Part shown: positions 23,012 through 59,774 of the stretch, piece after piece
Position numbering within the stretch: the stretch's first letter is position 1
Layout: every line of letters starts with the position of its first letter
Assembly: GCA_964304625.1 (NCBI GenBank)
Contig: OZ199838.1
Span: forward strand, 15,490,929 to 15,554,928
From: Kudoa neothunni
Lineage: Eukaryota; Animalia; Cnidaria
Direction: 5' to 3'
DNA length: 64,000 nt
Translations under genes and position numbers: made by a program
Notes under the pieces: generated by a model
Database searches by the model: none
What the model saw: the letters and a program-made list of their open reading frames with translations, nothing else
Told to the model about the DNA's origin: nothing

Positions 23012-26000
23012 TCATTTAAAGAGCTGAGGATCATTCTCTTTGGTGCATTCTTTATCTTCTGATTTAGACGAATGTTTTTTTCGTCTATATGTGGTCTTAC
23101 GTTTCCAACACATTGGATCCTCCTTCATGCGTTGCTTTTTAAGCTCTTCGGCCCTTTTTCTGTATTCCTGTTTTAGTTCCGTCGATAACATGCTCCAGTC
23201 GCTGCCAAGCATTTTTGATATATATCTTTAAATGAATAAAATATTATAATAAATAAATATAAATAAAATAACCTATTATCTTTTCCTGGGTGTTTTTTGA
23301 GTAGAAGAGGTCTTTTTTCTTGTGAATATAGAAAAAACCCATTCATAGGTCGTCTTTTTGTCATTGGAACGTTTGTTTTTAGTTTATTTGTTATTTTAGG
23401 TTTGGATGGATGGTCACAAAATGTAGGAGAGTGATTGGAACTGATTTGGATTGAAGGAATGATGGGCTGCTGGATTGATGCCACATTGACACTATTCACC
23501 GTAGGATCTTTTGAGCGGAAATTGTGGTAATTGCTATTTAAAATATAGAAAATTTATGTTTAATGTATAGTTATTTTATAAGCCATATAATAATACTGTA
23601 TTAAGCAAATGAACATACTTGAATAGATTTTTTCCCCTTGATGATGTCCATAAAGTAACGTTTTCGGGTGAGGAAAATGATGACTGATTCTCTAGTAGAA
23701 CGTTTGACGTATTCGTTGTAAAAGTTTCGAAAGTTCTGTTGTCAACTAGGAATGGATAGACGTATGCAGGAAGAGGTTTTGGCCATGCCATAATTGTGTC
23801 ACCAACTTGTAATATATTTACATTCATTCTTTCAAGTTTGTGGAATGAGCACCAACCTAGGTAATAATGATTGGATATCTCCATTATTGGATTAAATATA
23901 TAGATTTTAAATTACCATTATCACTAGTATAGAAAAGATGATTATGAGGACAATCTACGTATAAATTTATAAGGTAGCGTCCCGTGAATATTGGTATTTT
24001 TATTTTCACAATATATCTTGGCTAAAATGTAGCATTAATAAATATTTCACAAAATATACACACAACAGCAAGGTTATATCGAAAATAGTAGCAAAATAAT
24101 AAAATCACTTACCATTATATATTTATCGAGGTAATCGCTCAGTCCAATGTCATATATTTGAAGCCTCTGTCCCACTTTCCAGATCTGCATCAATTGCTGG
24201 AAATAAGCATTTCCGAAAATAGATTTATCACTGCAAAACCACGTCCCTATCAATTTTCCTGAAACTTCAATCTATTAACATTTGATGAAAAGGATCATGA
24301 GGACATTAATCTATAAAATAGAGTGTTACATTGATCATGCAATCTTCATTGAACGCCATAATAAACGGCGTTTTAGTACGCGTTATACGATAACTAGGGT
24401 ATCTAATAGGGTCAGAATTATAATTTTGGTCTAATTCCTCTTTATGCTGAGACCCTGGCGTTGAACTTCCTTTTGGTCTCATCGCACGAATATTAGTAAA
24501 ATTTTCTTTTAGTTGGTCTATGATTGACGCCTTAAACGAATCTGTTGTAGTTTCTCCTTCGTCATTTCTTGTACTAATTGGAACAGTTGGAAAGCATGAC
24601 TTAAAGGAGTGGTCCGTCGAGCAAAAGTTATTGTTTATGTTCGAATTTTCGTTGTTAGGATTTATATAAAATTTAGGGTTGGGATAGGAGTTGATTGTTT
24701 CAATTTTAGGAGTAGAATGAATAGAACCGATGTTGGAATTGGTGTTACTGTTGTGCGTGTAAGAAATATTATCCATGTAAGTGTTGGTTGTGGGGTCAGA
24801 ATTTCCATACATATTGGTTGTTTTTGAAATATTACTGGGTGGATTTTTTGGGATTGAATAGGGTCCTCCTGGTGCTATGTCGTTGGTGTTAGCAAGTGGA
24901 GGGAATTTATAATTTGGATTGATTTTTTGGTTAAAATATGGCGATCGGAAATTTCTTTGAAAACTGCGAGACGATGTATTATCACTTTCACAAAGGATTC
25001 TTGGAAAAGACATGTCATGATTGTATTGGTGTATTATTTGTTTTGATTCTACAGGAAAGGTGACATCGCCTCTAGTCATATGATGATGAGCTGGTTGTGG
25101 ATGTCGGAGGAATACATCATAGGGATAATTCTGAATTTCTCTAGGTAAAGTGTTGTTCATGCTAGGCATAGAAGCAATCGCAATGAACTCCGGAGGTTCG
25201 CCTCCATGATTAATTAATTTTGTTTGAATTAAATTTGGTGGGGTGGTGTTTTTATCATTAATTATATGAAAGTTTTGTCCCAGATCAACAAGAAGACGAC
25301 GTCTTTTGGGGAGGTTTTGGTTGGGAACAGCCTCCAATGAACGGTTAGGGTTGTTTTGATTGATTATCGAGGAGTTATTAGTAGATGACTTGTGAGTGGG
25401 ATCTGGATTATATGAAGTTACAGATGAAACACTGTAGACGACAGTTTCCTAAAAATAATAAAAAATATGAATATTCAATTCGAAATAATAATCTCGGCGC
25501 TAATTTAATCAAATTTATTTTATAAAATTACCATCTCACTCATTGTTTCATCCATTCGTGAATGGGTATTCAAATCATTGGAAATTGTAGTAGAATGATT
25601 TTGAGATTTAGACCTAGCTTGAGAATCGACGGCCTGTTGGATCCATTGTGTGTTTGTAGAATTTGTTTCGATTGGTGCATTTATATTCATATAATAATTC
25701 CCAGATTGAATACCATCGGAAATGCCGTAGTTTAGATAAAATCTAAAATCGGTTTCTGCTTTTGGAGGACCAAGGAATATATTAGGTTGTATGTTATGAC
25801 TATAACCATAATTTTGTATTTGTGGACAATCCCTTTCATCTTTTACTACAAAAGTATAGATTAAGATTATAAAATTGAATTCTTTTCTATTTATGATATA
25901 ATGGTTCATATTCAATTAAAGTCCATTTTAGCTCAACATGAAAGATAATTTTAGAGTTACCATCGATCACTTAATCAACTTATTCGGTAAGTTGTGTGAG

Positions 26001-32924: not shown

Positions 32925-34271
32925 ATGCTAGTGTCACACACAGTAAAGAGAACGTTTCATGAACCTAATAGCGTACCTTAGAGTTGTTTTTGGAAACGCG
33001 GAATCAAGTTTGTTCCGGTTTGGCTGCCCTATTTCAAATATCGGCACGCATCATCCATCTCCGGAGATACTGTATCAACACCTTCTAAATCGTGTAAAGT
33101 AGATGAAAAGATTATCAGAGATGAGAATAATGTTGCTTGGAGACCTCGACGATATTTTTTCCACACATTGCCATTCTACTACGCCAGCGCATCGAAACTA
33201 AGACTGACAAGTGTCTAGTTATTTATTTAAAAGATTGACGACTATAAATTATTGTTTTCTAGGTATGGTTGTACTTTCGACTATTGGCGGATGTGCAATC
33301 GCGCCAATTCCTTTTGACCCCCCAGTTACCTTCGTTATGGGTTTGTCGTCGTTTCTCTTGAGTTCCTCTGCGAATTCTATCAATCAAGTAGTTTTCGATG
33401 CTAATCTAGTTGATATATTAATGATGCGACGTGTTATTTTAGCTCATGGAATATCCTCACGATTCACAAATGCATAGAACCAAACAGAGATTGTTACCTC
33501 TGTGTGCAGTTAGGTAGATTTTATGTTTGTTCTGATCGTTGAACCCAGCTTCAATTTTATTATAGCCCATCTCAAATGCTAATGTTTGGACTAGGAAGTG
33601 GAATGTTAGGTGCCGGTTTGCTGACCTATTTCACTAATCCAATTACTGTTGCTCTATGTATGCTTGGTTTTGATTGGGGAGAATTTTGCGTTATTTGTTG
33701 GTATATAGCTGTATTTAACTTGTTGCTATATGTCGGTGTTTACACTCCACTGAAACAAATGTCTATATTCAATACTTGGATTGGCTCAATTGTGGGAGCT
33801 ATTCCACCATTGGCTGGCTACACAGCCATGACTGGCCACATCGACATTAGTTCATTATTTCTAGCGTTGGTGTTGTATTGTTGGCAGTTCCCTCATTTTA
33901 ATTCATTGAGTTGGTTGCTGAGAGAGAATTACGCAAGAGCCGGCATCAAAATGATGTCCAACTATGACGTTTCTCTACTCACAAGAGTTACTATTAGATA
34001 TGCTGTAGTGACAACGCTAGTTTGTAGTGTCATGCCTGTTGTGTGTGGTCTCACCACCCCAAACTTTGCAATCTCATCTCTACTGGTGAACTTTCCAGTT
34101 GTTTATCTGTCCTACAAGTTTAAACTTGGCCCGACAAACTCAAATTCCTTGTCTCTGTTCAAAATGAGCCTGGTTCAACTGTTTTTATTGATTTTATTGT
34201 TGATTATACATAAAAAACCTTTGTCATCCTTACGTTCCATAGAAGAGGGTGGAGATAAAACATCTAATTAG
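32925..34271 (+). CDS. COX10: Protoheme IX farnesyltransferase (heme O synthase), mitochondrial, multi-exon
   Basis: Presequence-like N-terminus (..KYRHASS); SKLRLT|SMVVLST, SANSINQ|LMEYPHDSQMHRT, YVGVYTPLKQMSIFNTWIGSIVGAIPPLAGYTA, WQFPHFNSLSW..YARAG (UbiA/COX10 signatures). Confidence 0.95.
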
Positions 34272-37810: not shown

Positions 37811-40800
37811 TTAGGAATCGAAGATAGGATTTTGAGAGGGAGAACTATCATGAGACATTCCCTCATCAGCTGACACCATTTCATCAGTGCTTACATCTTT
37901 GTTGATATCTAGGCGGTCCATTTGATCGACAACCTCACTCATTCGTTCACTTTTGGGAGCATTACATTGTTCCAGCGCCTTGTGGAATTGCTCAAACAAA
38001 TGGGGAAATTTTGATGGCGAAGCGAGAGAGGCTGCATATTTATCGTTCAAAATGGCCACTTGGTCTTTCCATTGCTCGAAATATGACTCAAATAGTTGAG
38101 GATCGTATGTATGTGCAAAAAGAGCGGCTTCAGGGAACTTTCGAGATTGAGCCAATATCTGCACACATTCAGCAACACTACAGCCAGCCAAAAATTAACA
38201 CAAAATTATTTACTCCATATAGAATGGAAAAATTCGATTCTAATACTTTCCAAGAATGTGGTTGGCAAGGAACGAAACATTATAAAGTCGTTGTTCAAGA
38301 GTTATTGAGGCAACTTTTCGAATAGTTCCAGCGTCTCGCATGCAATAGCACAAGAAAATCAAGGTGGCAAAATCCTCAGCTTTCAACAAACTTTCTCTCG
38401 CAATGTCAAAGCGTCCGATTTTTATCGAATGGGTCGCCAACTTTTTCCAAATTTCTCTATCCTATACATACACACATACATACACACATACATACTTACA
38501 TACATACATCCATGCATACATGCATACATGCATACATCCATGCATACATACATACATACGTACACATAAACATACGCATTACAATAAAAAATAATTAATA
38601 ATAAAATTAATATTTTGAACAAGGTAAATGAAATTAGGAGAGAAAGAATTAAATTAGTGAAACTACTTCGAGAAGATGTGCCAACTGAAGTGACTGTTCA
38701 AATTCCTTCAACTTCAATGCCAAAGAGAATTTTTGATAGTTGTCAGTGGCGACAGATAATGCTTCACGATAATAGCCCCTGGTTTGTAAGAATTGGGCGA
38801 TTCTTGAACAATGTTCCTCTGGAATTTCACTCAACAATCTATAAACCAATTCTGTGTCTTGCACATTACCAGAGAGAATGAGTGTTTGAAAGTGAAGCAC
38901 AGATATATTCAACTTGTAGCAGATTATATCAAAAGACTTATCGCCCAAATAGATCCTGTCTTCATTTGGCACATAGTTCAAAATAAAATATGGTTTCTCC
39001 ATATGAGCAACCACAACGACTTCACTACCAATAGCGTAGCACAACTTGTTCACTATAGTCAACATGAAAACATTTAGATCGACAAAAATAATGGAGAGAA
39101 TAACGATAATAATAAATGATTACATTTGTTCACAAACAGGAAACAATCTCCAACCCAAATACCAGATGAGATGGAGCTATCATACTCTTCAACAAGGTCA
39201 AAGGCCCCTTCGATACCATCGTCGATCGTAACACACTCACCAACATCACCATTCATTGAATGAATTTGTTGGAGAGTATGATCAACTTGATCCACATTAT
39301 ATTTCAACACATAGAACGAATGTTCGCTGGCCAACGCACATAAATTTCCACCACTATTCCAATAAACCTGAACAAGGTAGAATTTAACGCCCAACCAAGA
39401 AAAGAAAATACATTGTAGGGAGTGATTTCCACTCGATGGATAAGATCTAGATTGGTCCAATTATAGAAATAGACCTCGGATTTGGTTCCTACGCCCAAAA
39501 GATATCCTCCATAGAGTTCTAGAAAGACTTAATTGTCAAGTAACAAACAATTATAACACACCCCCAGGATAGTATTTAAGTTTTAATTTTTTCTCAACTC
39601 GGAAATTTCTATATAGATTGAGAGTTTCGCTTTCGGTCACTGCGAATCTAAATAACAAAATTTCACAATTCTATTCAATATACATAATAATTTGATAGAG
39701 TTAATTCACAGTGATAAAATAATATAAAAAACTAATAAACCGTAAAATTACGAAGAAGAATCTGAAGACCAACAAAAGGAATCTGATTTGCCAAAAACTT
39801 TGCTTCTTAGCGCGAGTGCAGTGTACACTGTGAATTCGAAACTTCCGATCACAGCGACATACCTAATATCATTCAATTAAAAACATATCGTAGGGATTGC
39901 GCAAATTATTCAAATTACTTTCCATTAGGACTATGCAGTAGTTTGTTGGGGAAAATTTCGCATGTGCCTAGTTCCTTAATGATTGGAGCTATGATCTCCC
40001 CGTCTTTAATATCAGCAGCTAAATAAAATAAATACACACAACACTTAAAAAATAAATCCTAACGAATAGCTAGATACTTTGCATGAGCTTGGTGTTGGCT
40101 TGGACAATCTCCGAATTTTTACAAAGTAACAATTTCCCATTAGAATCCATCGATATTTTTGGCAAATCCTCTCCCAACTAATCATCCACACTGAATCAGT
40201 TGAAATCCACCTCAAATATACCTGCACGAATATGGATCCTTCATCGAATGCAATAGCTAATCCATTAACTCCTTTACGTAAACTTAAATCCCACACTCTT
40301 CCAAGGCCATAGTTGAGCACATTTTCCAATTTGTATGTGATTGCATTCCAAATTCTAATAGTTCCTATATGTGAAGTGACGATTTATTGGAGAAACAAAA
40401 TAAAAAGTTGGACAGGTGTTACCATCTTCGGATCCAGTGAAAATAAGAGGGAGTTCTGGATGGAATTTCGTTGACATGACATTATCACCATGACCACATA
40501 AAGTTTGAATGCAGGCTTTAGTCTACCAAACAAGGTAAATATTAGTTGAAACAAAAATTAATTGAGATTCACATGATAATCCCAGATTTTAATCAGCCCA
40601 TCATCTCCACCACTGATCAAATATGGTTTATCGCCACTGAAACAATAATCCACACAATTGGAGCCCTATATTAAAATCATTGTAACTGGAAACGAATATT
40701 AAAAACAAAATTACATGACTGTGTCCTTCGATGGTAAGGTTAGCCTGATTATGTCCAATTTGCCATACCTAGAAAAATCACTTGAGTTAACACATTGATA

Positions 40801-43800
40801 AGTAATGTTGAAATTATCTATGTATCAATAAATAAAAACATGGTGGGTTTAATTTAAGATACTCAATTATTTAGATTGAAAAAATAATAAAATTAATTGA
40901 AAATTATTCGTTCTGAATACTATCTAAAAATAATTTAAGGTGTATTAATTTATTTCTGTAATATCATTAACAATGTCGATTTTATACATATTTTTATAAT
41001 TGTTTATAAAAATATGACGTAACATAGAATTTAATTATTTTTGATGAAAGAAAGAATTTCTTAACGTTATTAAACCAATAATGATTTTATCATTGTAATT
41101 AAAAACATGAATGAGAGAAAAATTAATATATGAGTTTAATCTGCAAATGCCCGACGAATAAAAATATTAAATATGTGTTGGATTCCCCTTGGAATTAGAA
41201 AGAACTGAAATATTTAAATTTCGAAATAAAGCTTTAAGTATATTAATATCTTGGAATTTTGGTAATCTAAAATGTAAAGTGTTGCATTATTGGATGAATG
41301 ATTATTTTCTCTATGTACACTAGGAAAACTGGTTATTTCGAATAACCTGGGAAAGAATGTTGGCATCATTTTGACTGTTAGCAACTCAAATGTTACATTG
41401 TTTAAACCTCGGTCACATGCATGGGGTGCAATGGATCCCACATGATTTCAATATGCAAATAACTATCGTTGTATTTTTTTGGTAACACTAAAATGAAAAT
41501 ATTCATGTTTTTTACGTTTTCTTCAAAATGAAAATGGGAAATGGACTTGAGAAAATTTTGAAAAGATGATTTCGATGACTGTAATGATGAAAAAAGCAAT
41601 GATTCAAGCTCTGATGTATCATCAAAAAATAATAAAATAAACAAATATTTCTTAAATAAAGGGTTTAGATGATAGCGAACATTTGTTATACTCCAAAAAG
41701 TTTGAACGGAGCTCAAAGCCAGTGGGATTATTTTCAAGAAATGAGAAAACACGACATTATAACGGATAAACAGGGAGTAAAAATTCCTGATGATGTGGAA
41801 ACAGACTCTCAAATTTGGAGTTTGTTTATCACTGAGAATATATTAACTGAAATATTGCAATGTACCAATTACTACCTTCGAAATGTCCAACCAAATTACA
41901 AACGATCGCGAGATTGTATGGCATTTGATATGTGTGAATTAAAAGCTTGCATTGGTTTGCACTATTTTCTTGGCGCAAAGAAAGCTAATCTTACTCATTT
42001 GAATGAATTATGGGCAGATGACGACTTTGGTTTTCCAATTTGCAAAAAAATATTCAACCAGAATAGATTTTCCTTGTTAAAAAGATGTCTACGTTTTGCA
42101 ACCGGTTCAAGTAATTCAAATGAAAATAATCAAGATAGAATGTCAAAAATAGGAGATATTTTTAATCAAATAAATTCTAGTATCATCAAATATTATATAC
42201 CCACCGAATATTTGACGATCGATGAAATGCTTGGATCATTCCGGGGTCGCTGTATTTCAAAGAAGTATATGCCTTCTAAGCCAGCGAAACATGGGATTAA
42301 GATTTTTAACCTGTGTGATTCGAAAACTTTTTACACCCTTAATCTTGAATTTTACCTAAGAAACCAGAATAGCGCCCCATATAAAGTTGACAACTCACCC
42401 CATATTTTAGTGATGCGCCTGATTCAACCAATTCTGGGCTCAGGAAAACACATCACTGTTGACAACTGGTTTATATCAGTTCCATTGTTTCAGGAATCAT
42501 TAATGAATGGAACAACTGCTTGTGGTACCATTAGAAAAAAAAAGAAAGAAATACCTCCTGAATCTCTGGCTTCAAAAACCCATGAACAATACTCATCCTC
42601 TTTTACATTTACGAAATATCTAACGTTTGTGTCTTATGTCCCTAAAAGATACAAAGCCGATACACTGTGGAGTTTGTTTCACCACAGGTCAACCGTTGAT
42701 TTGAACCATCATAAAAAGCTGCCAGATATCGTCTCTTTTTACAATTCAACAAAGGATGTAGGAGTTGATACAATAGAACAAATGTGTGGGGACTACCCTA
42801 CTTATCGAATTACAAGAATACACTTCTCGATATTGTAGCAATAAATGCATATGTTATATATTGCATGAAGGTCGATAAAATTATTCGTCGGAAGGAGTTT
42901 TTGAAGTCGTTGAGTATGCAATTAATAGAGCCTCAGTTTAATAAATTGATAATTTTTTTGAACTTAAATTTAGTAGAAATCCAAAAACCTGCCAGTATGG
43001 AACCAAAAAGCTCTCTGGTTGACAGCGGAAGATGCTATTTATGCACCTGTCTACACGATAAAAAAAACAAGAACAAGTGGTCAGACATGCTCAAAATTTG
43101 TCAGCAAAATGCAATTAAATATCAATTGCATAAACTGTCAATAAAAAAACATTTTCAGAGTTCAGTCCGAAGAAAACCCAAAACTATTTAACGATATAAA
43201 TGCAGCGACTTTTGAGGCCACAGAAAATACATATCTATTCTTCACCAACTGATAATTGAATAAATTTCTTATAAAAAGCATACATTTTTTGAAATAAAAT
43301 AAAACCAAAACAAACATCATCATGAAATTAAAATAGATAAAGGAGGAATTATTTTAATACGTATAGAACTATTAAATATTTGATTATAAAATAACCATCA
43401 AAATTTTTGTTTTTTCGCATAAATTATATTTAAAGTTGCACAATTTTTGGAATAATCCAATTTTCAGAAAATAGTTAATTTATGTATACAATTAAGACTT
43501 AACTAACTTACATTAATTATCCAATCACCACTCAACAACAACAACAACAATAATAATCATCAATACATACCTTTATAAATTTATCAAGACACGCACTCGC
43601 AAAGATGTTATGATCTTTTGGGTTGAAACACACTGCCATAATGTAATGTTGATGTCCTTCAAAAGTACGAATGCATTGCCAATTTTTCTCCCAATCCCAC
43701 AACTTGATTACCATATCGTCTACAAAAATCAACTCTATCCACAATTTATCACCAATACAAATTCACCTCCAGCAGACAATACATAAGGAAGGTTGGGATT

Positions 43801-44322: not shown

Positions 44323-44551
44323 TTCCTGAAGTTTAACGACGCACGCATAGAGTTTGGTGTTAAATATTGGTGACTGATTGATTGGTCAGCATGTATTAAA
44401 TTCGGTTATTTGTTGGAGATTATTTTGTTTATATGTATTTTTTAATGTGACTTTGGTGTGATGTGGTTTTTAAGGAGTGAAATTGTTGGCGAGTGCGTGC
44501 GCATTACACGTTGTCATTTATAAATTTGTGATTTTTAGCTTCTGCTTATTA
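44323..44551. promoter_or_regulatory. Bidirectional promoter region COPB2/PDCD2 with CCAAT boxes
   Basis: 229 bp between divergent ATGs; ATTGG motifs (TGATTGG) at ~44366-44386. Confidence 0.55.
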
Positions 44552-45784
44552 ATGTCGAGAATTATTTTGGGTTTCGCTGATAAAGTGGAAAATGCAGATT
44601 TTGATTTTATCCAAACAATGCCATCAAAAATCGGAGGTCAGCCGAAATGGCTCACTTTATCAAATGTGCCCACTAGTGAGTCTGTTGTTTGCGTAAAATG
44701 TGAAAATGCGATGCCATTGCTACTTCAAATATATGCCCCTCTTGATTCATATGGTCATGCGTATCACAGAATGATTTATGTGTTCTGTTGCAGAAATGCT
44801 GGTTGTCATAAGGCTCATAATTCTATTCCTTTCAAAGTGCTTCGAACAAACACCCATAATTTTAATTTGGATGTGGATGAATCTATAAAGGATCCCATAA
44901 AGTGCGAATTTTCTGGAGTTGAAAATTTAAAAAAACGGTTTTCTTATAGGATAGAACAACTATTGTTAAAAACGAATAATGTTGACCTGTGTGTTACATG
45001 CGGAGTCAAAGTGAAAATGGGAGAAACTTTTTGCTGCAAGAGACATGGAATTATTCAAAAATTATTAAATGAAACTAAAAATAAACATCAACCAGCTTTA
45101 TTCTCGTTCCCTCTGTATGAAATTGTTACCGAAGAGTTGGATCCCAATATGAAATCCAAGAACAAACAAAATAAATACTCATTGGAAAAAAAACTTTTAG
45201 CCGAATATGAAAAGGTTTGACTATAATAAGAAGATGGTTAATCGATCGTATTTATGTTTATTTTTATGATTAGAAAGGCCCCTTAGTGGATGACAACGAT
45301 GATGAATTAGACAAAGTGGCGGAAAGTTTGCTTGATGATAACCACAAATTCCATGAGAAAACCTTCGAACACTTTAGAGACTCTATGAGTGATTATCCAG
45401 ACCAGGTTTGTTCGATCCAATTTTGAATTTGATATAATTGTTATGTAGATTCTACGATATGCGATAAATGGCACGCCATTGTTAGCTTCAAGTCGTCCAC
45501 TTCCAATTCTACCTGCTTGTAAAAACTGTAATGCACCTCTTCAATTTGAATTTCAGGTTGGTTGACGTGATTGATTGGTGTCAATATTTTAATTCGGTTT
45601 TCAGATTATGCCTCAACTTATCAATTACTTATACCCTGAATCTATTCTCTCCGCCAATTCAAAATTCCAACCTGATGATTTCCTCGAATGGGGCACTTTG
45701 CTAATTTACACTTGCTCAAAAAGTTGCCTCTCTCCTAATCAATCCTATGTAGAAGAATGTCTAGTCAAACAAGATTATGATTAA
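44552..45784 (+). CDS. PDCD2: Programmed cell death protein 2 (PDCD2/Tsr4 family), 4 exons
   Basis: IILGF..PSKIGGQPKWL..CVKC..LLLQIYAPLD..YHRMIYVFCC; C-terminal domain PDQ|ILRY..CKNCNAPLQFEFQ|IMPQLINYL..EWGTLLIYTCSKSC..YVEE. Confidence 0.93.
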
Positions 45785-47728: not shown

Positions 47729-49978
47729 TTATTTCTTTGACAAGACCAAGAAAACGATTCCACAAACAAGTAATGCCATTAAGGCCGCACCAACAATCAG
47801 TCTATAATGTCATTAGAACTGCTTGAAAATAAAAAATATTACAGGACTTTTGTTCCACCAACATTAGCACTAAATTAAAATTCATAATAGATATATTAAT
47901 CGAAGAAATAACTCTTACCCGTCTGATGTGCCTAAAAAGAATTACAATAATTATCTAGTTAATAGATCTTTTACCTTGTTTGGCAGTTTCTGGAGAGATT
48001 GAGTTTCCATCCCCTCCAATTTTTGCATCTCCGAGATACACTACGGTCGGCTCGCTAATGTATCTTGCCTGTACTTTCATTGAGCCCTGTTTGTAGGAGG
48101 CAGCGTTGTAAAATGTTATTTTTTGGTTGCATTTCCCTTCCCATCCCGTAGTTTGATCAAATAATCCATAGGTGTATTTAATTGCTCCATCTACTATTTC
48201 AGCAAATGTTATATCGCATATTTGGTCCGGATCCATTTCGGCCATGGTGGCTGTCACAATCAAGTCAGTGTTATTCCATGTGTGGGTAACATTAATTTTT
48301 TGTAGACTTTCAACTTAATTAACTTTATTTGAGAATTTTTATTTTTAATTACTTGTCGATACTGTTATCATATTTGCATCCAGGTCACTAATGTATTTAC
48401 CAAATAAATATTTGAATTTATATTCGGTATCAGGCAAAAGGCTTTTAATAGTGAGCGGTTGACCACATAAACCTGAACAGTCAACAGATTCCTCGCATTC
48501 AGATGGACTAAATTCAGTTTCGCCCTTCATTTTCTGTTTTATTTTACAATATACATCATTAAATAGAGGTGCGTTTGGTGCTATGGTCACTTTTACGTGC
48601 TCATAATAAGCTTTAATCTCTGGCTTTTGTGTTATGCTGTAGTCAGCTTAATTCAATTTTAGATTTTTTAATTTTTATTTTTTACCTGTTTTGAAAAGCT
48701 TCTCTGCACTATATGATACGCTTGGAGTGGTTTGAGTATACGTCACGTTTACAATATATTTTGTGTTTGGTTCGAGGCCGTGAATAGTAGCGTCAGTGCA
48801 ACCAGTCGGGCATCCTGCTGTCATATCAGCATTGCATTTGACGTCAAGTTTAATCTTAGGGAATTCCTGTTTTCTCAATTCAATAGCGCAAGTTGGGGTG
48901 GTTAAACTATCATTAAGCGCGGCAATAGAAAGGATTGCGCTAGTTTCTTTTGGGGCTACTCCGAGGTTACTTTTATCAACTATTTAGCCTATAAATAAAA
49001 TCATTTACATAAAAATAATTACTTCTTAAAGTTTTCTCTACTCCTTCATAGTTTCTTGTTGATACTTTAATGTTGAAATCTTTTTTGCTGGTATCAAAAT
49101 TTAGTTCCATTACAGCATCAGTGCAGAGTTGATAACATTTATCGCTAACATCCGGAACAGAGCAATTTGAAGAATAATTTTGATCACTCTTTTCTTTAAT
49201 TTCAAATTTGCATATTTCATCCCTCATATCCTCATCAAAAATAATATTTATTTTATTTTCTGCAGCTTTGGTAATATAATAAGGAAGTTTATCTAATGGA
49301 TTGAACTTCATCCATTCATTATTTTCTCGATGCATGTGTATTTTTGGTCGGTTGACTCCACAAGAAAGTTCGACTGATTCACCCATTAAATCGTATAATC
49401 CAGTTAGGTAATTTTCAGCGTTGCATTCAGTATTATAAGCAGGCGTGAACTGATCGATGACTTTTTCCCCGCTTGTTAATCTACAAGTTTGAGGGTGACT
49501 GCAGACATTTTTGGTGGTGAATACAATGGAGGTTGCATTTAACGAAAAATGAGTTTCAGATGTATTACCAGTAACTAATTGGATATCATTTAAATTTTCT
49601 TAATAAGAAATTACTATGGACTATCTTTAGGGTTTCAGTTGCGAATTTGGACTTTATTTGAACGTAATAGACTGGGAAAGCAGTTCCTGTTGAAATGGTA
49701 TATTTTCCAAAACAAGAAACGTCTTTAAGTTTTTCCTCTTCAAATTCACCATCAATATAATGATAGAAAAATTCGTTTTTTTCCAAAAATTTTATGTCGC
49801 ATTTAATTCCTGAAACTCCTTCAAGTTGTAGATGGATTTTATCTTCTTGATTAATTGGATCCCTTTCAACATAGTACTTGTGCGAGTGGGCTAAATAAAT
49901 ATATAAGAGATAATCCATCATCCGGCCAACCGTACCATTGTAGCAGAGAGAAAGGATCAGCAAACTAGTGAACAACAT
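47729..49978 (-). CDS. Unrecognised surface protein A: signal peptide, ~6 Cys-rich FN3-like modules, C-terminal hydrophobic anchor; 9 exons
   Basis: Spliced ORF MLFTSLLILSLCYNA...; modules with IHGLEPNTKYIVNV and KSLLPDTEYKF; phase-1 introns between modules; micro-exons of 13 and 27 nt; ends LLIVGAALMALLVCGIVFLVLSKK*. Confidence 0.8.
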
Positions 49979-52900
49979 TTTCGGTTCTTAATTAAAAAGG
50001 GCTTATTATTTGCAATAAGAATTATACAAACTAATGTAATTGTAGATATCAATAAGAACGGAAAAAGTAGATTAGGGACGATCCCTAAGAATGAATAGTA
50101 TTTCAATATACAATTGGCAGCTAACAAATAGTATTATATACGAAACTAAATCCTTGTTAACCTTATAGATAATTTTATTAAAGACAGATATTTTAAACTA
50201 AAAGTAGATCACTAGAAATCAATAAAAATTATTGGTTTCGAATTTTCGTTTCCAGAGTAATTCTAGATTAACCTATTGGTTGATCGAAGTATTTGTTTAT
50301 TAATTCTTCTAGGAATTTATAAACAGAACTGTCAACATACAGAAGTTTTATAATAAGTTTTTTCAATGTATTAATTGTCTGTAGACGTGTTATCATTTTT
50401 AGTACAAATATATTTTTGCATTGTGTATTTTATTGAAATATTTTAGTCCATTAAAATAAATTTGTTTTAAAAAATAATTTTCATTAAAATGTTGAGTAAT
50501 AAGTGATAAAAAAATTTGTTTAAAAATTCCTAAAAATAACTTTACATTGAGGAAAATATATATTATAATAAATGCGAATAATAAATTCTAAAACGTTAAT
50601 TGCTTTACCGATAGTGTATACAGCAGTATTTCCAGATCCTGGAACATATAGCTCAAATGTGGGTCATGGCATATTTAGGGTGAGTCTTTATAAATTTTTT
50701 GTCTAATTTGAACGGCGTAGGAAACGTGGATCCATGCAATGCGGAGCACTCTCGAGATAGAAAATTTAATTTTAACTTTTGGATTTGAGTTATATTGATC
50801 TAATACAAATATTACATTTAAGTTACATATAATTATTTTAAGAGTAACATTATATTTCAAGTTAGGAAATGATAAAAAATTTTCACAACATGCGATCTGA
50901 GATGATCATAAAGTGTTCCAATACGGCAATACTCATTATTTCGTTCAGTTGTTTTTATTGCACACGATTCAATATGTATATTAAAAATCTGACCGAGACT
51001 TGGGTTAATTTTTCTATCCATTAAATTTTACACACGTAATTGTTCATGTATTTCTTATCCCTGTTTAATTTCGTGATACATAGGGGTTTGACATTATAAG
51101 TTTCTCTATTTTTAATAAATTAATATTGAATAGAACTATTCCAAATATATCTAAGTGAAGCGAGCGTGTTTTGAAATAAGACTACGTGTCAAAATTAGTT
51201 ATTAATACTTGAAAATATTTTCAATTTCAGTTTACTCGACGGGTTCATAATCCTAACCGAAATATTGAAAGCACTAATCATTTGAAATTCTTTTACAGAA
51301 AGAATTAAATTAGATAATAATATAAATCTGTGTGAAATTAAATATTGCTATTGTACAAAATAATGTTCCTGTAGTTATTTCACGAAAATACATTCCGCAC
51401 GTTCCAAATTATCTTCTTTTTATCATCGCTATACGCAAATTTATTATACATAATAATCGAATAAAATTTTTAAATATTTTATGTAACAATAAAGAATTAT
51501 TAAAGAAATAAATTTAATTAATAAATAATTCGACCAAAAAAGACATCTTATAACACACAACATTAAAAAACTAATAAAAAATATATATATATATATAAAT
51601 CAATTGAAAACGAATAATTTTTAATAGCTTGAAAATGCATATTAGTTTTTCCCACGTGTTTTAAACGCATTTTTTTACTTTACACTAACGTATTTAATAA
51701 AGAAAACTGAATCGTTATTAAATCTGTTGAAAAGTAATGAATCGGAATCTTTTCATTACCCTCAAAATTAATAAATACTGAACCCCGAAATAATTTTACT
51801 TTAATAAAAAATTAACCTAAAAACGCAAATTTTTAAATCGTGGATAATACAACCTTATTATGTATATTATATTTGATGTTATCCCTGGATTAAATGATTT
51901 GTTTGCTTATATTTTGTTTGAATATTCTAAAATAATAGTTTTTTTATTAATGTTAATAAAAATATTTGTTATTAATTCTTTTTTTCATGTTAGAGCCAAA
52001 ATTTAAGAATAATATAATTAATGTTATCATTAACTAGATCTCTATTAAACTGGCGTTTTATTTGTTAATGTGATTACTCAAACCTTCATCAAAAAGTCAC
52101 TAGTATAACAACAATATTTAATACCTATTAATACTGATTTTTTGTATATTGAGTCGAACATTAGAAATAAAAATCTTTCAAAATATTAATTGATCTATTT
52201 AATTCAGATAGAATAGTATACTTAATATTAAAGGACTAATTTTTTATAATTTAAAGCAAAAATATTGATAATTTTAATAAATAATCTTCAAATTCTTGAA
52301 GTATTAAAGAGCATTGATATTAATTGATAAAAAGATATTTTCGAAAGAATTTGATTAAAATTTAAATTGACTGAACTAAATGAGATTGTGTTTAAATATT
52401 TTTATCTCATTTTATGAATTGAGGGAAGTTATTTGGGTATCGGTTTTTACGAGTGTTACTTCACACGCGTGATATGACGTGATGAGCGTGAAATGCATCA
52501 AGTATCACGTCTTTTAATCGAGCCCACCCTTTTTTGGAAACTATAAAAGCTAGAAAATTAGAATGAGGACAATAAACGATCGTACTTGATATAAAAAATT
52601 GTCGTTTTTATGAAAAGTAATGCACATAAAATCCTTTCTTCATCTTTAAATCCACTATGAATTTAAACTTAAATTAAATTTAAAAAAATTGTCGTAATTA
52701 TGTTAATTATTAGGATTGAGATTATATCGAACTGTGCTTTTGTAGTTGAAACTCGAAGGACCGCGGTTATCTCATTTTTACTTTAATTTATCCGTTTTTG
52801 AGTGTAACGAATACCACATTTATCATTTTGATAACATCATATGTCGTGCCACATCGCAACCACACTCTCGTTATCACGTTCACGCTTTTTAGGAATTCTA

Positions 52901-54029
52901 GAAATTATACATAAGAATATATTTTGCATTCGTTGTATTTGATACTGAAGAAAAATGTTATAAAATACTAATAGTTTCTATCTTTTTATGATGATAGTAT
53001 TGGGCCCTAAAAACCTAAATTCCTTAAAAGAACCAAAATAATTATTAATATTGTAAAATTATATCTAAACTACTAATTAAAATATGAGAGAATGGCGAAA
53101 ACTATTAAAAGCAAGAGTGATACGTCAATATAATACTGGCTTGAAAAAATCACCATAAAATTAGTGGTAAATAAATTTTTTAATTAATAACTTCAAAATA
53201 ATAATTATGACAACAAAATATAATTTTAATCATTAACGATTTTCATTATGTATAATACCGGATATAAGTATTATTATAAAATTAAAACTGTAAAACGTTA
53301 TATTCGATTGAACATTGATGATATTTGCGCGGATCACTGGTCTACCCCTTGAAAACCAAAATTGCTCAAAACAAAATTTATTAATGATGATAGAATACAA
53401 TGTATCCCAACCTTTTTTAGGTGTGACCTATATATTTTCAAACAAATATCCGGTGAGCCACGCAAATATTGTAAGTTTTTAATAGAATTAAAAGTTACGT
53501 TTTAAATTATATTTATATCCAGTATTATATATAATAGTTTAAATCGTATACTTTGTCATAATTATTTTTACTCTGTTAATCTAAAAATATTATTTAACAG
53601 TATTTTACTGGACTTTTGAAGTAATAATAATTTACTTGAAACCAATATTATTAAATCATAAAGGTACTCCTTTATTGATCTGTCTCATTAGGTTTTTAAT
53701 GATTTTCATGATATTCTCGCATTTTAATTATTTATAATTTAATTTTTCTGCCTGTAATATTTATTTTTAGTTATTTAAAAAAAACTTAGTTTTTAGGCTA
53801 AATGATATAATCAATGGAAATTTAAAAATTACCAGTATTTGTTGATTTTTTCCTCCATATCCAATGCAATTAACACTAGATATGTTTTAATTATAGCTTC
53901 TCTCTATCCATACAAAATATTAAGTAAAAAATTTAGCGTGCTTCTCTTAAATTCGATAAATTAAAATTTAACCTTCAATGACTTTCAGATAACGCGATTT
54001 CAGAATAATCTGGATTTCACTCTACTTCA

Positions 54030-54606
54030 CAGGGCGTCCGCCCGCTTGGGTTTTTCCCCTAGATCTTAGGATTTTTGTGGTCACCTTGGATTCTTGGTTT
54101 TTTTTATTTTACTTTAAAATCTTGGGTTTTTATTGAAAACCTGTAAACATTGAATAATAACACAAATATTATTATGTGCGACATTAATATTTATATTTTT
54201 AATAACGTATCCTACTCAGATTATATCGTTCAGGGTTTAAACATGTATGATATTGAACGACAGCACAATAGATTGTTTAACGTGACACGATTACACATTT
54301 GTTCAGTTAACGTTGTCGCACATTATTAGAAAATTTAACGTTATTTTAAAATATGCCTTGAACTACGAATTAATTAATTCATTGTGAGCATATTGATCTA
54401 TACTAGATATTAAGTTTGAATGAGTTTTTCCACCAATAAATTGCAATAATACGACGATAAATTTAAATTTAATATCTGTAGGCGTATTTGAAGACTCGAA
54501 AGATGATTAAAAACTTTAACAGAAATGATTCTATTTTTTTTGTTTTACTTTAGGCTAGCGTTTTTCTCGACCTTGGGTTTTTTCTAAAATCCCGCTGGCA
54601 GCCCTG
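54030..54606. mobile_element. hAT-like MITE
   Basis: CAGGGCGTCCG / CGCTGGCAGCCCTG termini; repeated CTTGGG(T)n subterminal motif, also seen at ~61141-61200; no clear TSD. Confidence 0.5.
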
Positions 54607-55347
54607 TACACGACGTTCTATTGACCCCTAGAAGCAGAATCTTCCCTGCCCTTCAAATACTTTCGGTTCCGCGTTCAAAATTAAAATGTGTTTACACTTT
54701 GATTGACAACTTTTATTCGTTTTTTTGAGTTTCAAGATAATAAATTTTTAATCTTTTATTTAAAGGAACACCAGACATTACACATTACGGAGTAACTCAT
54801 TTTTAATGATTCAACTCTAACCGTTAATCCCTGGTGTGTTTACTTTAAAAATAACCGTAGTAATCATGAACAATAGTGAGTATTTTAAAGCATTTTCAAA
54901 ACTTTCGTACAAAGAAAAATTAAAATTATTACTGATGGTAGACCTCCTCTAGAGCTTCCATAATTACAACAAAAGATAAATTGAATTACCAGAACATTCC
55001 AAACTATCTGGTACAACAAAAAAGAATAGATATATGGTTGTATTACGACAAATCAATTTTTTTTGTTCGTGCATACTTTTCTCAGCATCCCACGAAAGTG
55101 TCTGGGTGAATGAAGGGTATTATGACTTAAAAAACTTTTGACAGCTTCAAAACTCACGACGATCTAATACTGGGGTAAAATCGTTGAATGCTTACTCCCA
55201 GCAAATACCTACGCCATGTGTCTAATGTATATATACGTATATAACATTGTATTTATTGATGTATTAAATCCTATTGTTATACTCATTGAATACCAAGAGT
55301 TAAATCGAAATATGCAGTATAATCTGATTTACTCTCTGTACCACAAA

Positions 55348-58303
55348 ATGAAAACTCAGTTAGTCACAGTTAGTTTATTAATTGCATTTTCATGTAGTTT
55401 ATTTACATTATTTATTTTACTAAATTCCTGTAGATATTATTGGAAATCCTGCTGCTGAAAATAATCCAGCAGCCCAAACTCCTACAAAAATACTTTCATA
55501 TGACATTGTAGACGGCAAAATTCAATTGGTTTTGACTGGATCAGATTATATTAATATTGCGAAAAAATGCCTCATAAGAAAGGAGAAGGATGACGGAAAT
55601 GGATTTGATCAGATAGGTACTTGTGAGGGGAGAGAAGACGCTAGTGTGACTGACAGATGCATACGTGCTTGTGCAGGAAATAACAACAAAATAGAGTTTA
55701 ATGCGCTTTCACCCAGAAAAAAATTTATTTATGTTTTTTCCGGAGCGAGTGCTGGAACAATACAAGAGAGTAATACTGGTGGGGATGTTTTTGGACTTGC
55801 TATTCGTAATTTAAATAAAATTATTCATTTTCTTTAATAAAAATTAGCGCTATTGGTGAATCCAAAAATCACAATATCGATTGATGATAGTTCGAAAAAA
55901 TTAACACTTGCAGCTAAAACTTGTCCAAAAGTTGCCTGCCCCATTTTTTATAAAGGTATTCAATATGCGGCCGGCACAGGACAGGGAAATTGTGATACTG
56001 ATAACAGCGATAACAAAGTTGATTTTGACCTCATGATTCCTTACTATGAGATGATATGCACGAATTACCCGAGTTTCTTCTATCAAATGCCAAATCCGTA
56101 CATGAAAGAAAATATTGACATCTACAAACCACAATACTACGTTACTTACAAAAAAGATGACGCTGATAAGAAAAATTATATCCTGAAATTCACCAACTCA
56201 TTTCCTTCCGAAATATGTTTATTCAGTATTAAAGACGCTTCAAGTGCTGCTACAGAATCCACAAAGAATTATGCATCAGTGTGCGGAGGAGGAACTGATA
56301 AAAAGTGTTTTGCACCTTGTGATACTGTTGAATTAACACTAGCTGAGTCTAAACCAATCGTCGAAATATTAATTCAGACTAGACATCATAATTTACAAGG
56401 AAACAATGCAAAAATTGAAGGTTATGAAGAGAAAAAATATGGTATGATTTTTACTATGAAAACTTAGATATTTATTTATTATAGTTATCGAAGAGTCTGA
56501 CGATCCGAATACACTTTTAAGTGCGCAAACGGATGTAGGGATTACACTTGACCGGTCTGCATACAATCCAGCTTCTACCACACCAAAATTTGGTACGTGT
56601 TCATTAAAACATTTACCCGCCGATAAACTCAGGAAACCCGATGGAGAAACAACAAAATGCACTGATGGCGCTGGTTGTGGCACTACATGTTCAACACGTT
56701 CTGTTATACAGGACCTAACTGCGGGGAAAGCATATATAATTGAGATTACTCCGGCCGATCTTGGTACTAATTATGCAAATTTTAAAGAATACCTATTTTT
56801 CAGAACAAGTAAGAGAAATATTCATGCCGCTTATTGAATTATTCTTAGAAGAATCTAGTTCATCAAGCTTTGCTGCCACAGTTCCTATAGCAACTGACGT
56901 GACTGCTGCAATTAAAGCGGTTGAAGGTGAGGTTGGATCAGAAACAACTGAACCGACCTGCTCCTATTACGTCAGTATAAAAGATAAAAACACGTTTGTA
57001 GAAGCACAATGTGAAGACAGCAATCCATGTAGAGGATTTTGTAAAGACACCAAGAACTTGATAAATCTAAACCCTAAAACAAACTACGATATTAAAGTTG
57101 TTTCACACAAAGACTACGGAACCAAACTATTTGAAAATATTTCAACTAGTAAAATAATTTTAATTTAAGCTAATATAAATTATATTCTTTAGCTTGGTCA
57201 ACCATGACCCTTTCCCAAAGATTCCTAGATAAAGGGTTTAAAGTGGCTGGAACTTTGACATCCGTTTATCCACAAGCAACATGTCACTATAAAATAAGAG
57301 AAAAAAACGGAGACACTCTAAAAGATGTTTATTCCTGTCCAGAAGTTGTCCCTCCGCCGCCGTCTGTCAGTCCAGCCACTGAAGATATTTCTGATGCTCC
57401 TCCTTCACCTACTCAAACTCAGGAAACGACAGAATCAAGGCCGGTCAGCGTTTCAAGATTGCGTGGAATAAAAATAGCAAGAGCAGTTAATGCAGAAGAA
57501 GAGAATTCGACATCCACTGAGCCCGCCATTACTCAATCTAAGTTTCCACCATGCAGCAAACCACCACTCTGCAGCAATATAATAATTAGTGATGGTTATG
57601 AGGCTAATAAAGAATACCAAGTATTGGTGACGGCTGTAGGTCGTTCAGAGGAAGTTACAATCAATATTCCTAAAAGTACTATAACAAAATTAATACAGAT
57701 ATTTTCTAAATTGTCATATAAATATAGATTCACTCCCAGAACTATCCCAAGATACGAACAAACAAATTACGGTAGTTATAGAGAGAGTAGGAGATACGTT
57801 AAAAATCACGTCATTGCTTCCAAAAGAAAAGGATGATAATTCAGTATGTCGATGGATACTGAGAGACATCACTGATGTTTCCCAACGAATAGTGAAAAAA
57901 TGTGATTCCAGTAGAAGTAAAGTTTGCAAACTTCCAACTTGCAAATCATTTACTATCAAAGAGGTAAGTGATACCAATGATTATCATTTAACGCTTATTC
58001 ACTCCCGAGATTCCAATGTTAAAGGTGTTGGAATAATAAAACGAGGTAACTAACAATTCATAATAATAATTATTATTATTATTATAATTAATAATTTAGG
58101 AGAAACTTCGAATCAATCCAGGTAAAACTAATAAAATAATGTTTAATGTAATATATTTCTAGGGCGAGCACCTCAATGTATTAAATTTTGAGTTGATATG
58201 TTGGAATAAGTTTTCATTTAGGATTGTTGGAATCATTGTTCCAGTCGCTATTGTTATTGTAGGGGTTGGATTTTACTTTGGTTATATGAAGAATAAAGGA
58301 TAA
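55348..58303 (+). CDS. Unrecognised surface protein B, paralog of A: signal peptide, ~7 Cys-rich FN3-like modules, TM, 5-aa tail; 10 exons
   Basis: Spliced ORF MKTQLVTVSLLIAFSY...; modules with NLNPKTNYDIKV, QDLTAGKAYIIEI and GYEANKEYQVLV; micro-exons of 22 and 15 nt; ends IVGIIVPVAIVIVGVGFYFGYMKNKG*. Confidence 0.82.
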
Positions 58304-59774
58304 CATTGATTAACTCAGTTAAACATTTGGAACATTTACATTATTTCTTATTAGTTTATAATTTTATAATTGAATATATTATAAATATTTGTAAATTCAT
58401 TTACCAATAATTATCCATTTTATTTGAAATATTGCTAAATCAAGATTTGATATTAGTTGAAATCCATCAAAAAGTAAAATATAAATTGATGGAGATATTT
58501 AAATTTCTTCTCGTTTAAATCCGTAGGAAATTTTTAGGAAAGATATCGATCAATATTTAATTCATATGTAGATTGAGTATTTATCAATAAGAAAATTTAC
58601 GTTATTTTTTATTATTTTTGATATATTAATTAGATTTTAAATTATTTCAAAAAAATTACCGTTCATAAAGATACAATTTCTATGGAGGATTTTAATTTTA
58701 AATCAATGACTCAAATATCTATTTTTTCGCTAATTGGACAGAATAATATCAATTAGCCGTTGTTTTTATCTAGTTTGAAGCGATCTGCATTGTATGCTTA
58801 GTTAAACCTATCCAGAAAAAATAGTTCGTTGTATACGTCTATCTTTATTAGAAAATAACATTTTAACCGTATCTCCTCCGCGATTTGTGTGATAATCATA
58901 TATAAAATAACCGATTAATTCATAAATTTCTTCAGAAACAATATCTTTACGTTTATATTCAGATTGGTTCCCGTTTACTTCTTAGAATTTGTAAAACATT
59001 TATAACCTTCTAACTTAAATGTTCTAAATACAATCCGATCTAGTATCTACCGCGGAAAATGAGGTTCATTTTGACCCCAATTTACTTTGAAGGTTTCGAA
59101 TTGCACAAATACACTGAACTCATAATTAAATATATTAAAACATATTATTAAGAGATTAATACATAATAGTTAAAATGTAAAAGTGTGAGCCCTGTTGACA
59201 AGCAAATTTTTGAAAAATATGCGTCATAATTTCGTTTCGAGTCTATACGAACCCAGTTTTACTTACTAAGTTAATTATCATCAAAAAAATGTTGAAAATA
59301 ATATATTGTAATTTTAGTTCATTTTGCCATATAAGGGGTCAATCAGACTCACAAATACTCTTATAATGGGTAGTCATATTTATTTTTTCTGGTTCTATTG
59401 AGTTAAACTTTAATATTTACTAATAAGGGATTATTTTAAAAAAATTAACGCTTTATTACCTTCATAATCATAAATCCTTGGATTCGTTCAAATATAAACA
59501 AAATAAGGGTCATTGTTTTTGCTTAAAATAGATTTTAGTCCTCGAACTTTTAAAATTCGAAATCCTTCGAAAATGTTGAAATAATTAGTAACTGGAGAGA
59601 AATTGATATTTTTTTGTTGAATGGATCGATTTAGAAAAAATGAATTGTGAATTATACTGTGAATATTTAGAAGAAAAATTTTCTCAATAAATACAATTTG
59701 CGAGGAAATAAAGTCAAAGAAACATAATTAATTAAAAAAGACATTTCAAGACACTTCAGCAACTATTTTTTTAA

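Follow-up and report, generated by a model that had tools for sequence, protein, structure and literature searches.

Proteins that display tandem fibronectin type III (FN3) domains on a membrane anchor are, as such, a known kind of molecule. In the metazoan adhesion proteins of the contactin, NCAM, Dscam and titin type (PF00041), modules of about 100 amino acids (aa) fold into seven-strand sandwiches with a tyrosine corner and follow one another in tandem, one module per phase 1-1 exon, on a membrane-anchored chain. Here we describe two genes of the same design, A and B, in a 64-kb stretch of the genome of the myxozoan Kudoa neothunni (C1:15490929-15554928; hereafter the window, in whose coordinates positions are given unless preceded by the name of one of the assembly contigs C1, C2 and C3). 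Their predicted products differ from the proteins above in the four invariant extra cysteines of the core modules, in the lack of an Ig-domain head and of a cytoplasmic domain, and in having several hundred paralogs in a 40-Mb genome. As judged from sequence comparison, both genes are intact members of a very large family of putatively membrane-anchored FN3-like proteins, with adhesion or coating at the parasite surface as their most likely role.

Expanded sets of membrane-tethered, disulfide-fixed sandwiches devoid of a signalling tail are also found among the SRS proteins (SAG1) of Toxoplasma and the 6-Cys (s48/45) proteins of Plasmodium. The likeness is one of design only: the Kudoa genes are spliced, exon-modular and metazoan, the fold of their products matches FN3 and not SRS, and their anchor is probably transmembrane. 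Neither 6-Cys nor SRS domains gave a Pfam match at E up to 1 in ten exon open reading frame (ORF) translations, nor a sequence match in the PDB. Among myxozoans, lineage-specific and highly duplicated membrane proteins resembling VSP, RIFIN and STEVOR have been reported from Sphaerospora molnari and proposed to serve immune evasion or attachment (bioRxiv 10.64898/2026.02.11.705288). Compared by description only, these families and that of Kudoa are both made up of duplicated myxozoan membrane proteins, but the former are described as like the VSP, RIFIN and STEVOR proteins of protists and not as FN3, and the word "fibronectin" has no occurrence in the S. molnari paper. The published K. neothunni assembly, whose source is yellowfin tuna sequencing data, represents a genome of 40.2 Mb in three chromosomes (N50 12.0 Mb, GC 30.4%, introns of ~49 nt, median intergenic distance 3.6 kb), 45.6% of which is classified there as repeats; its 5,316 proteins were predicted from protein hints only, since very few RNA reads mapped (PMC12239612). 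The assembly analysed here totals 40,260,978 bases, divided among large contigs of 17.15, 12.04 and 11.05 Mb and a fourth, small contig.

Results

Two divergent genes share one plan

The initial annotation had proposed two spliced genes of roughly 640 and 850 aa, pointing away from each other about 5.4 kb apart, and our rebuilt models close exactly at the ends proposed for them, encoding 636 and 851 aa. All 17 introns are GT-AG, with lengths of 39-54 nt. The common plan that had been read from the sequence was recovered in both genes: a first exon of 43-46 nt, ending in phase 1, that codes for a hydrophobic signal-like peptide; phase 1-1 module exons, five in A and six in B; a pair of micro-exons shifting the phase from 1 to 2; and a last exon with a hydrophobic segment of ~21 residues followed by 3 (A) or 5 (B) residues, which leaves no signalling tail. 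Database searches and fold predictions were run on single exons, the joined proteins being used only for local lengths, motif counts and one pairwise alignment. The features of both genes are the following.

47729-49978, minus strand: gene A, A-type, nine exons, 636 aa; introns GT-AG, 39-49 nt.
49936-49978, minus strand: gene A exon 1, start codon and hydrophobic signal-like peptide; ends in phase 1.
49615-49890, minus strand: gene A exon 2, membrane-distal module with two Cys; linked by profile to B exon 2 (62%, E=7.5e-5).
49023-49574, minus strand: gene A exon 3, double module with eight Cys that is the hallmark of the family; 57-68% identical to 19 paralogs.
48686-48979, minus strand: gene A exon 4, 4-Cys FN3-like module with exact L-x-P-x-T-x-Y; Pfam fn3 E=0.007, below threshold.
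48353-48646, minus strand: gene A exon 5, 4-Cys FN3-like module; ~20 paralogs.
47975-48313, minus strand: gene A exon 6, 2-Cys membrane-proximal module; weak profile link (22%) to the N-terminal part of B exon 6.
47919-47931 and 47843-47869, minus strand: gene A micro-exons 7 and 8, small-residue linker, phase 1 to 2; GT-AG borders hold the frame into the putative transmembrane exon.
47729-47801, minus strand: gene A exon 9, 21-residue hydrophobic anchor, tail S-K-K, stop codon.
55348-58303, plus strand: gene B, B-type, ten exons, 851 aa; introns GT-AG, 40-54 nt.
55348-55393, plus strand: gene B exon 1, signal-like peptide; ends in phase 1.
55434-55805, plus strand: gene B exon 2, 4-Cys membrane-distal module, among the two most variable; mean pairwise identity 0.45.
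55848-56441, plus strand: gene B exon 3, double module with eight Cys, conserved more than any other part.
56485-56808, plus strand: gene B exon 4, 4-Cys FN3-like module, variable; mean pairwise identity 0.44.
56849-57148, plus strand: gene B exon 5, 4-Cys FN3-like module, folded by AlphaFold2 (AF2).
57193-57675, plus strand: gene B exon 6, module interrupted by a ~70-residue Ser/Thr/Pro-rich (mucin-like) insert.
57728-58045, plus strand: gene B exon 7, 4-Cys membrane-proximal module, 87-100% identical to paralogs at C1 16.3-16.56 Mb.
58100-58121 and 58163-58177, plus strand: gene B micro-exons 8 and 9, phase 1 to 2 to 2.
58222-58303, plus strand: gene B exon 10, hydrophobic anchor, tail M-K-N-K-G, stop codon.

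Gene A contains a single stop codon, at 47729-47731. The pattern of its first exon, M-L-x-I-x-L-L-I-x-S-L-C-Y-N, is kept in 11 A-type paralogs, as is the anchor with its basic tail (..F-L-V-L-T-K-K). When 20 diverse B-type paralog loci were scanned, 18 had an exon comparable to B exon 1 ahead of exon 2 and 19 had the B-type anchor, in most cases as ..G-F-Y-F-G-Y-(W/M)-K-N-(K/R)-x. In the insert of B exon 6 the Ser/Thr/Pro content peaks at 55% over the 40 aa that start at residue 595. N-glycosylation sequons number eight in protein A and three in protein B.

Three motifs had been said to occur in most modules. Their relaxed forms are indeed widespread, but the exact forms are rarer than claimed among the 13 modules counted: C-x-[IFY]-x-I-K is exact in two, with a relaxed C-x-hydrophobic in all 13; C-x(5-11)-C-x3-C is present in seven (eight if x4 is allowed); and L-x-P-x-T-x-Y is exact in three and found in relaxed form in 8/13.

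A and B belong to different subfamilies

Exon 3, which the initial annotation had considered alignable between the two genes, gave 32% identity over 127 aa by BLASTP (E=8e-8); a profile comparison of its C-terminal halves (A3c and B3c) reached 97.7% (E=1e-12), and phmmer linked A exon 5 to B exon 5 (E=2e-7). Comparison by hhalign of one profile per module, each built from 12-28 paralogs, recovered the same-position links A3c-B3c (97.7%), A5-B5 (96%), A4-B4 (94%), A2-B2 (62%) and, weakly, A6-B6 (22%), together with the cross-position links A4-B5 (95%), A4-B7 (80%), B4-B5 (68%) and A5-B4 (65%). Given the same-position links, A and B are colinear paralogs from different subfamilies, B having one extra module. 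On the same profile evidence modules 4, 5 and 7 are genuine internal repeats; the distal, the proximal and the exon-3 N-terminal modules are too diverged for a sequence link to them. The suggestion that the symmetry of these exons permits module shuffling fits both the five module exons of the A-type versus the six of the B-type and the homology of modules 4, 5 and 7.

The two genes had further been presented as a head-to-head pair. As a unit this pairing finds no support, because they belong to different subfamilies, the nearest relatives of each lie elsewhere and a long spacer with a dispersed repeat separates them. The divergent start codons are 5369 bp apart, so the 5.4-kb spacer exceeds the genome median intergenic distance. 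The repeat, of ~520 bp at 54086-54628, has at least 40 scored copies with 80-92% identity on all three chromosomes (215 first-look candidates) and shows very high k-mer depth in one sequencing run covering the locus; it is probably a non-autonomous transposon. No decayed family member and no partner of the C-type described below was found in the spacer or the remaining window, nor was any family exon or relic besides genes A and B detected within the 64 kb.

The core module as a divergent FN3 domain

In an alignment of 42 paralogous copies of the module-5 exon, used as the core module, C37, C54, C60, G62, C64, L73 and Y79 are invariant. AF2, supplied with the paralog alignment, folded module B5 with a predicted local distance difference test score (pLDDT) of 84.6 and a predicted template-modelling score (pTM) of 0.72. 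Foldseek searches with this model retrieved almost exclusively FN3 domains, and its top 50 VIA matches were all FN3 (Z 8.1-9.0, 78-92 of 99 residues aligned, root-mean-square deviation 2.2-3.9), contactins, fibronectin, titin and monobodies being among them. At the sequence level, the module-5 profile matched titin (2.1e-11), fibronectin (7e-4) and Dscam (1.3e-3) in the PDB, all at positions 62-92, which correspond to the E-F tyrosine-corner region. Given the confident fold, the all-FN3 structural matches and the profile matches to titin and fibronectin, the core module is best modelled as a true, though divergent, FN3 domain that has gained four cysteines, predicted to lie around the C-C' region and where strand B begins. 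The B5 and exon 3 models with their Foldseek and VIA matches, along with the profile matches, thus agree with the FN3-like beta-sandwich first proposed for the modules; the label "Cys-knotted" attached to it is a guess. A feature search of the ESM Atlas gave a best score of 0.76, under any useful level.

Across 62 aligned copies of exon 3, drawn from four subfamilies, the invariant residues comprise seven Cys, one Phe and one Arg. The AF2 model of exon 3 (pLDDT 85.9) consists of two beta-sandwiches, the N-terminal half matching generic Ig-like sandwiches (Z 6-7.5) and the C-terminal half FN3 domains (Z about 6). The structures nearest to the whole model are tandem FN3/Ig receptors, with marginal scores (G-CSF receptor, TSLPR, IL-7R, CD45 d1-d2, IL-17RA). 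The class I cytokine receptor homology module, CD45 d1-d2 and IL-17RA are likewise two-sandwich units with conserved cysteines and provide the top Foldseek matches of exon 3, but these matches are marginal (E about 1e-3, template-modelling score about 0.3, VIA Z below 8), the Cys spacing is different and there is no sequence match. Identity as class I cytokine receptors was rejected, WSxWS being absent from A and B and the tails being only 3 and 5 residues long. Searched against PDB sequences, the exon-3 profile had no match at E up to 10. Alignment of exon 3 with the single-module profile put the cysteines in register, yet with a probability of 3%, which is not significant.

A family of several hundred copies

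Genome searches scored at most 150 candidates per query, so that copy counts are lower bounds. With B exon 3 as query, at least 150 genomic copies were scored, all with E<1e-57, out of 469 first-look candidates, and B exon 5 gave the same picture; a profile of all subfamilies yielded 590 first-look candidates, 150 of which were scored, all with E<=1.3e-63. Stop codons are missing from 148 of the 150 scored exon-3 copies. Module order is kept in 27 of 28 B-type loci and in all 11 A-type and all 4 C-type loci. As judged from sequence and a hydropathy heuristic, the 31 A- and B-type loci scanned include 29 with a signal-like first exon and 30 with a transmembrane anchor, most of these anchors having a basic tail; by the same heuristic both A and B have a signal-like N-terminus and one C-terminal hydrophobic helix with basic residues. 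The gene A subfamily comprises about 20 copies with 57-80% identity on C2, C3 and elsewhere on C1. The closest relatives of gene B (77-90%) form a same-strand tandem array at C1 16.31-16.56 Mb, 0.9-1.0 Mb downstream; clustered tandem arrays, such as that at C1 16.44-16.56 Mb, are found in the family.

A gene of the third (C) subfamily regularly precedes A-type genes, ~2.7 kb upstream and on the same strand. Such C-type and A-type pairs are present at C2:8150887-8154067 and at least six other loci (e.g. C3:8156893-8160125, C1:2779971-2783212, C1:6036504-6040743); the C-type gene follows the same five-module plan, with 31-44% identity. Gene A of the window is devoid of an upstream C-type partner. 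In a B-type paralog at C2:10199224-10202824, exons 3 and 4 are ~1.85 kb apart versus the usual ~45 nt, a gap that is probably due to a transposon insertion in the intron or marks a broken copy.

Selection and mosaicism

Ratios of nonsynonymous to synonymous substitution rates (dN/dS) were calculated pairwise, exon by exon, by the Nei-Gojobori method. For gene A they amount to 0.19-0.29 in exon 3 and 0.08-0.16 in exon 5, with dS of about 0.8-1.9; since such dS values go together with low dN/dS, the gene A lineage is old and constrained. In the comparison of gene B with the array, dN/dS was 0.44-0.62 for exon 2, 0.15-0.29 for exon 3, 0.26-0.53 for exon 4, 0.18-0.59 for exon 5, 0.3-1.0 for exon 6, which bears the mucin-like insert, and 0-0.24 for exon 7. 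The corresponding dS drops toward the 3' end, being 0.55-0.8 in exon 4 but 0.06-0.17 in exons 6-7, and the nearest paralog of gene B changes from exon to exon; gene B is therefore a mosaic of the kind expected from gene conversion. Family-wide, mean pairwise identity is highest in exon 3 (0.57-0.63) and lowest in the adjoining modules (0.44-0.45).

Selection on A and B is thus purifying, with dN/dS mostly of 0.1-0.6; no exon exceeded 1 in this pairwise comparison and only the mucin-like exon 6 approached it. The family had been described as fast-diverging, which agrees with distal modules that are relaxed or diversifying but not with the dN/dS of 0-0.62 outside exon 6. Genes A and B can be viewed from these comparisons as dispersed intact copies from two old subfamilies, evolving under purifying selection far from the arrays.

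Relatives in other sequence collections

A profile search of 1.84 billion representative proteins returned 22 matches only; each of the 20 examined is an unnamed singleton that derives from an ENA or Logan assembly, and the contigs of six relatives come from four samples (ERZ795007, ERZ28624939, SRR31175926 and SRR33849685). These relatives from metagenomes and the Sequence Read Archive (SRA) share 25-71% identity with the K. neothunni copies sampled, most retain the module-2 spacing C-x(13-22)-C-x(5-8)-C-x3-C, and the B-type module order is kept in two longer contigs. The sources searched held no named match, in keeping with the lineage-specific and unrecognised family first proposed, which appears to be restricted to Kudoa and related myxozoans. 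We found no paper mentioning both Kudoa and fibronectin type III, and the text of the K. neothunni genome paper contains neither "fibronectin" nor "gene famil(y)" (PMC12239612). As far as we could find, the four-Cys module, the fused eight-Cys double module and their expansion to hundreds of genes in an animal parasite of ~5,300 genes have not been described.

A contig from SRR31175926 carries, besides its family gene, an SNF5 gene whose domain is only 44% identical to that of K. neothunni, so the family predates K. neothunni by a wide margin. The family gene lies there ~3 kb from the SNF5/INI1 gene (1350-2798 and 6001-6609), and at C3:1355653-1362282 of K. neothunni an SNF5 match lies ~6 kb from a family member; given the copy number, this proximity may be due to chance. 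The relative on the SRR33849685 contig has an uninterrupted 333-aa ORF that continues gap-free across the B exon 2/3 junction, including the split Pro codon, and that splice junction is supported by the passage of this intron-less ORF through it. The same relative (163-1026) shares 27% identity with exon 2 and 43% with exon 3, and marks an intron presence/absence difference at a phase-1 module boundary.

Genomic neighbourhood

The surroundings of genes A and B are transposon-rich. Besides the spacer repeat, the window contains the following features.

1476-2357, plus strand: ORF matching the piggyBac-type transposase domain DDE_Tnp_1_7 (E=7e-46).
21053-21583, plus strand: ORF matching DDE_Tnp_1_7 (E=3e-7).
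24306-25337, minus strand: long ORF of 343 aa with no Pfam match.
33576-34271, plus strand: housekeeping fragment upstream of the pair, UbiA prenyltransferase domain.
38649-39065, minus strand: housekeeping fragment upstream of the pair, COPA/B TPR and beta-propeller domains.
41669-42838, plus strand: ORF matching DDE_Tnp_1_7 (E=1e-58).
44477-45220, plus strand: long ORF of 247 aa with no Pfam match.

Discussion

Our analysis favours the view that A and B encode type I membrane proteins, from which the signal peptide would be cleaved. Their ectodomain would be a rod, with six beta-sandwich modules in A and seven in B, exon 3 contributing two fused sandwiches whose eight cysteines may pair in disulfides, and a single transmembrane helix with a basic tail of 3-5 residues would anchor this rod. 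Because such a tail is too short for signalling, an extracellular role is favoured, most likely in adhesion or as a coat at the surface of the parasite. RGD and NPxY, motifs of integrin ligands and endocytosis, are absent from both proteins. The family probably expanded through tandem duplication, dispersal, the addition or loss of symmetric phase 1-1 module exons, and gene conversion between neighbours.

Several observations weigh against this interpretation. The Pfam fn3 matches remain below the gathering score (16.9 bits for A exon 4 and 15.7 bits for B exon 5, the cut-off being 25), and Pfam searches of the exon ORFs gave only sub-threshold matches to fn3, NDNF and the purple-acid-phosphatase N-terminal domain. 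Modules A2/B2 and A6/B6 and the N-terminal half of exon 3 are tied only weakly to the FN3 core by hhalign, and the structures, those of B5 and B exon 3, are predictions built on paralog alignments. A sequencing run covering the locus, one of four that contain the stretch, all from one sample and study, behaves as DNA, its reads covering introns and spacer without any splice joint. In three metatranscriptomic runs that bear the same species label, and in which the presence of the parasite is not established, zero reads fell on 53000-58400 of the window. Finally, the stretch of small residues before the anchor could be the omega region of a glycosylphosphatidylinositol (GPI) attachment signal.

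The same molecules might instead work within the parasite, either in homophilic or heterophilic adhesion and recognition between the nested cells of plasmodium and spore or as a structure of the spore surface. Membrane-anchored arrays of FN3/Ig domains are the usual design of metazoan cell-adhesion proteins, with contactins, NCAM and Dscam as the nearest structures; purifying selection, the strongly conserved core double module and a family older than the species, as indicated by the 44% identity of the SNF5 domain, also speak for such a role. It is nonetheless rather unlikely, for hundreds of copies are hard to square with very few cell types unless they constitute a recognition code.

It is tempting to speculate on a repertoire of variant antigens, of which one or a few genes would be expressed at a time on the surface of the plasmodium and switched to evade fish immunity, A and B being silent or active archive copies. 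The very large copy number (590 candidates, 150 scored), the clustered arrays with mosaic similarity between neighbours, the variable distal modules beside a conserved core and stalk and the minimal cytoplasmic tail are what such a system would show. As in variant surface antigen systems a large clustered repertoire is present, but diversifying selection was not detected by pairwise per-exon dN/dS, which never rises above 1 in any exon outside the low-complexity insert. Kudoa plasmodia in muscle grow inside muscle fibres, a location that would lower antibody pressure. We regard a switching repertoire as unlikely. An unlikely extension of the same idea is that a cnidarian parasite independently built a variable surface repertoire of several hundred members on a disulfide-reinforced FN3 scaffold, diversified it by gene conversion and module-exon exchange, and uses it at the interface with fish muscle, for immune evasion or the manipulation of host cells.

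As to the mode of attachment, the hydrophobic C-terminal exon might be a GPI-attachment signal, the mature proteins then being lipid-anchored like Toxoplasma SRS or trypanosome coat proteins. Small residues stand 5-10 positions before the hydrophobic segment (G-T-S-D-G-A-N in A, S-N-Q-S-R-A-S-T-S in B) and the tails are very short; against this, most paralogs conserve the anchor sequence and its basic ends (K-N-R-G, K-K-K-N, T-K-K), a better fit to a retained stop-transfer helix, and lipid anchoring appears improbable. That A and B are decaying repeat copies miscalled as genes, as the highly repeated family, the piggyBac-like ORFs and dispersed 520-bp repeat nearby and the lack of observed transcripts of A and B might suggest, is very improbable and largely refuted by nine and ten exons that stay open with canonical splice sites, dN/dS that stays far under 1, for gene A even where dS is about 0.9, invariant cysteines and confident predicted folds.

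Myxozoans are important fish parasites, and Kudoa species spoil the flesh of tuna and have been linked to food-borne illness. To our knowledge, almost nothing is known about myxozoan surface molecules. Our preferred reading, a large family of membrane-anchored FN3-like proteins at the parasite surface, offers a starting point for the study of host-parasite contact, for diagnostics and for vaccine antigens, to which the present locus adds two dispersed members and the relationship between the A- and B-types. If most candidates are real genes, the family would amount to about 3-10% of the 5,316 predicted K. neothunni proteins; part of it may be unannotated or repeat-masked in the published annotation, since those gene calls were made without parasite RNA support. 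The family could thereby help to explain how a drastically reduced animal genome comes to invest in one family. Should the variable-repertoire reading prove true, the protozoan VSG, var or SRS systems would have a counterpart in an animal, perhaps one missed by the published annotation.

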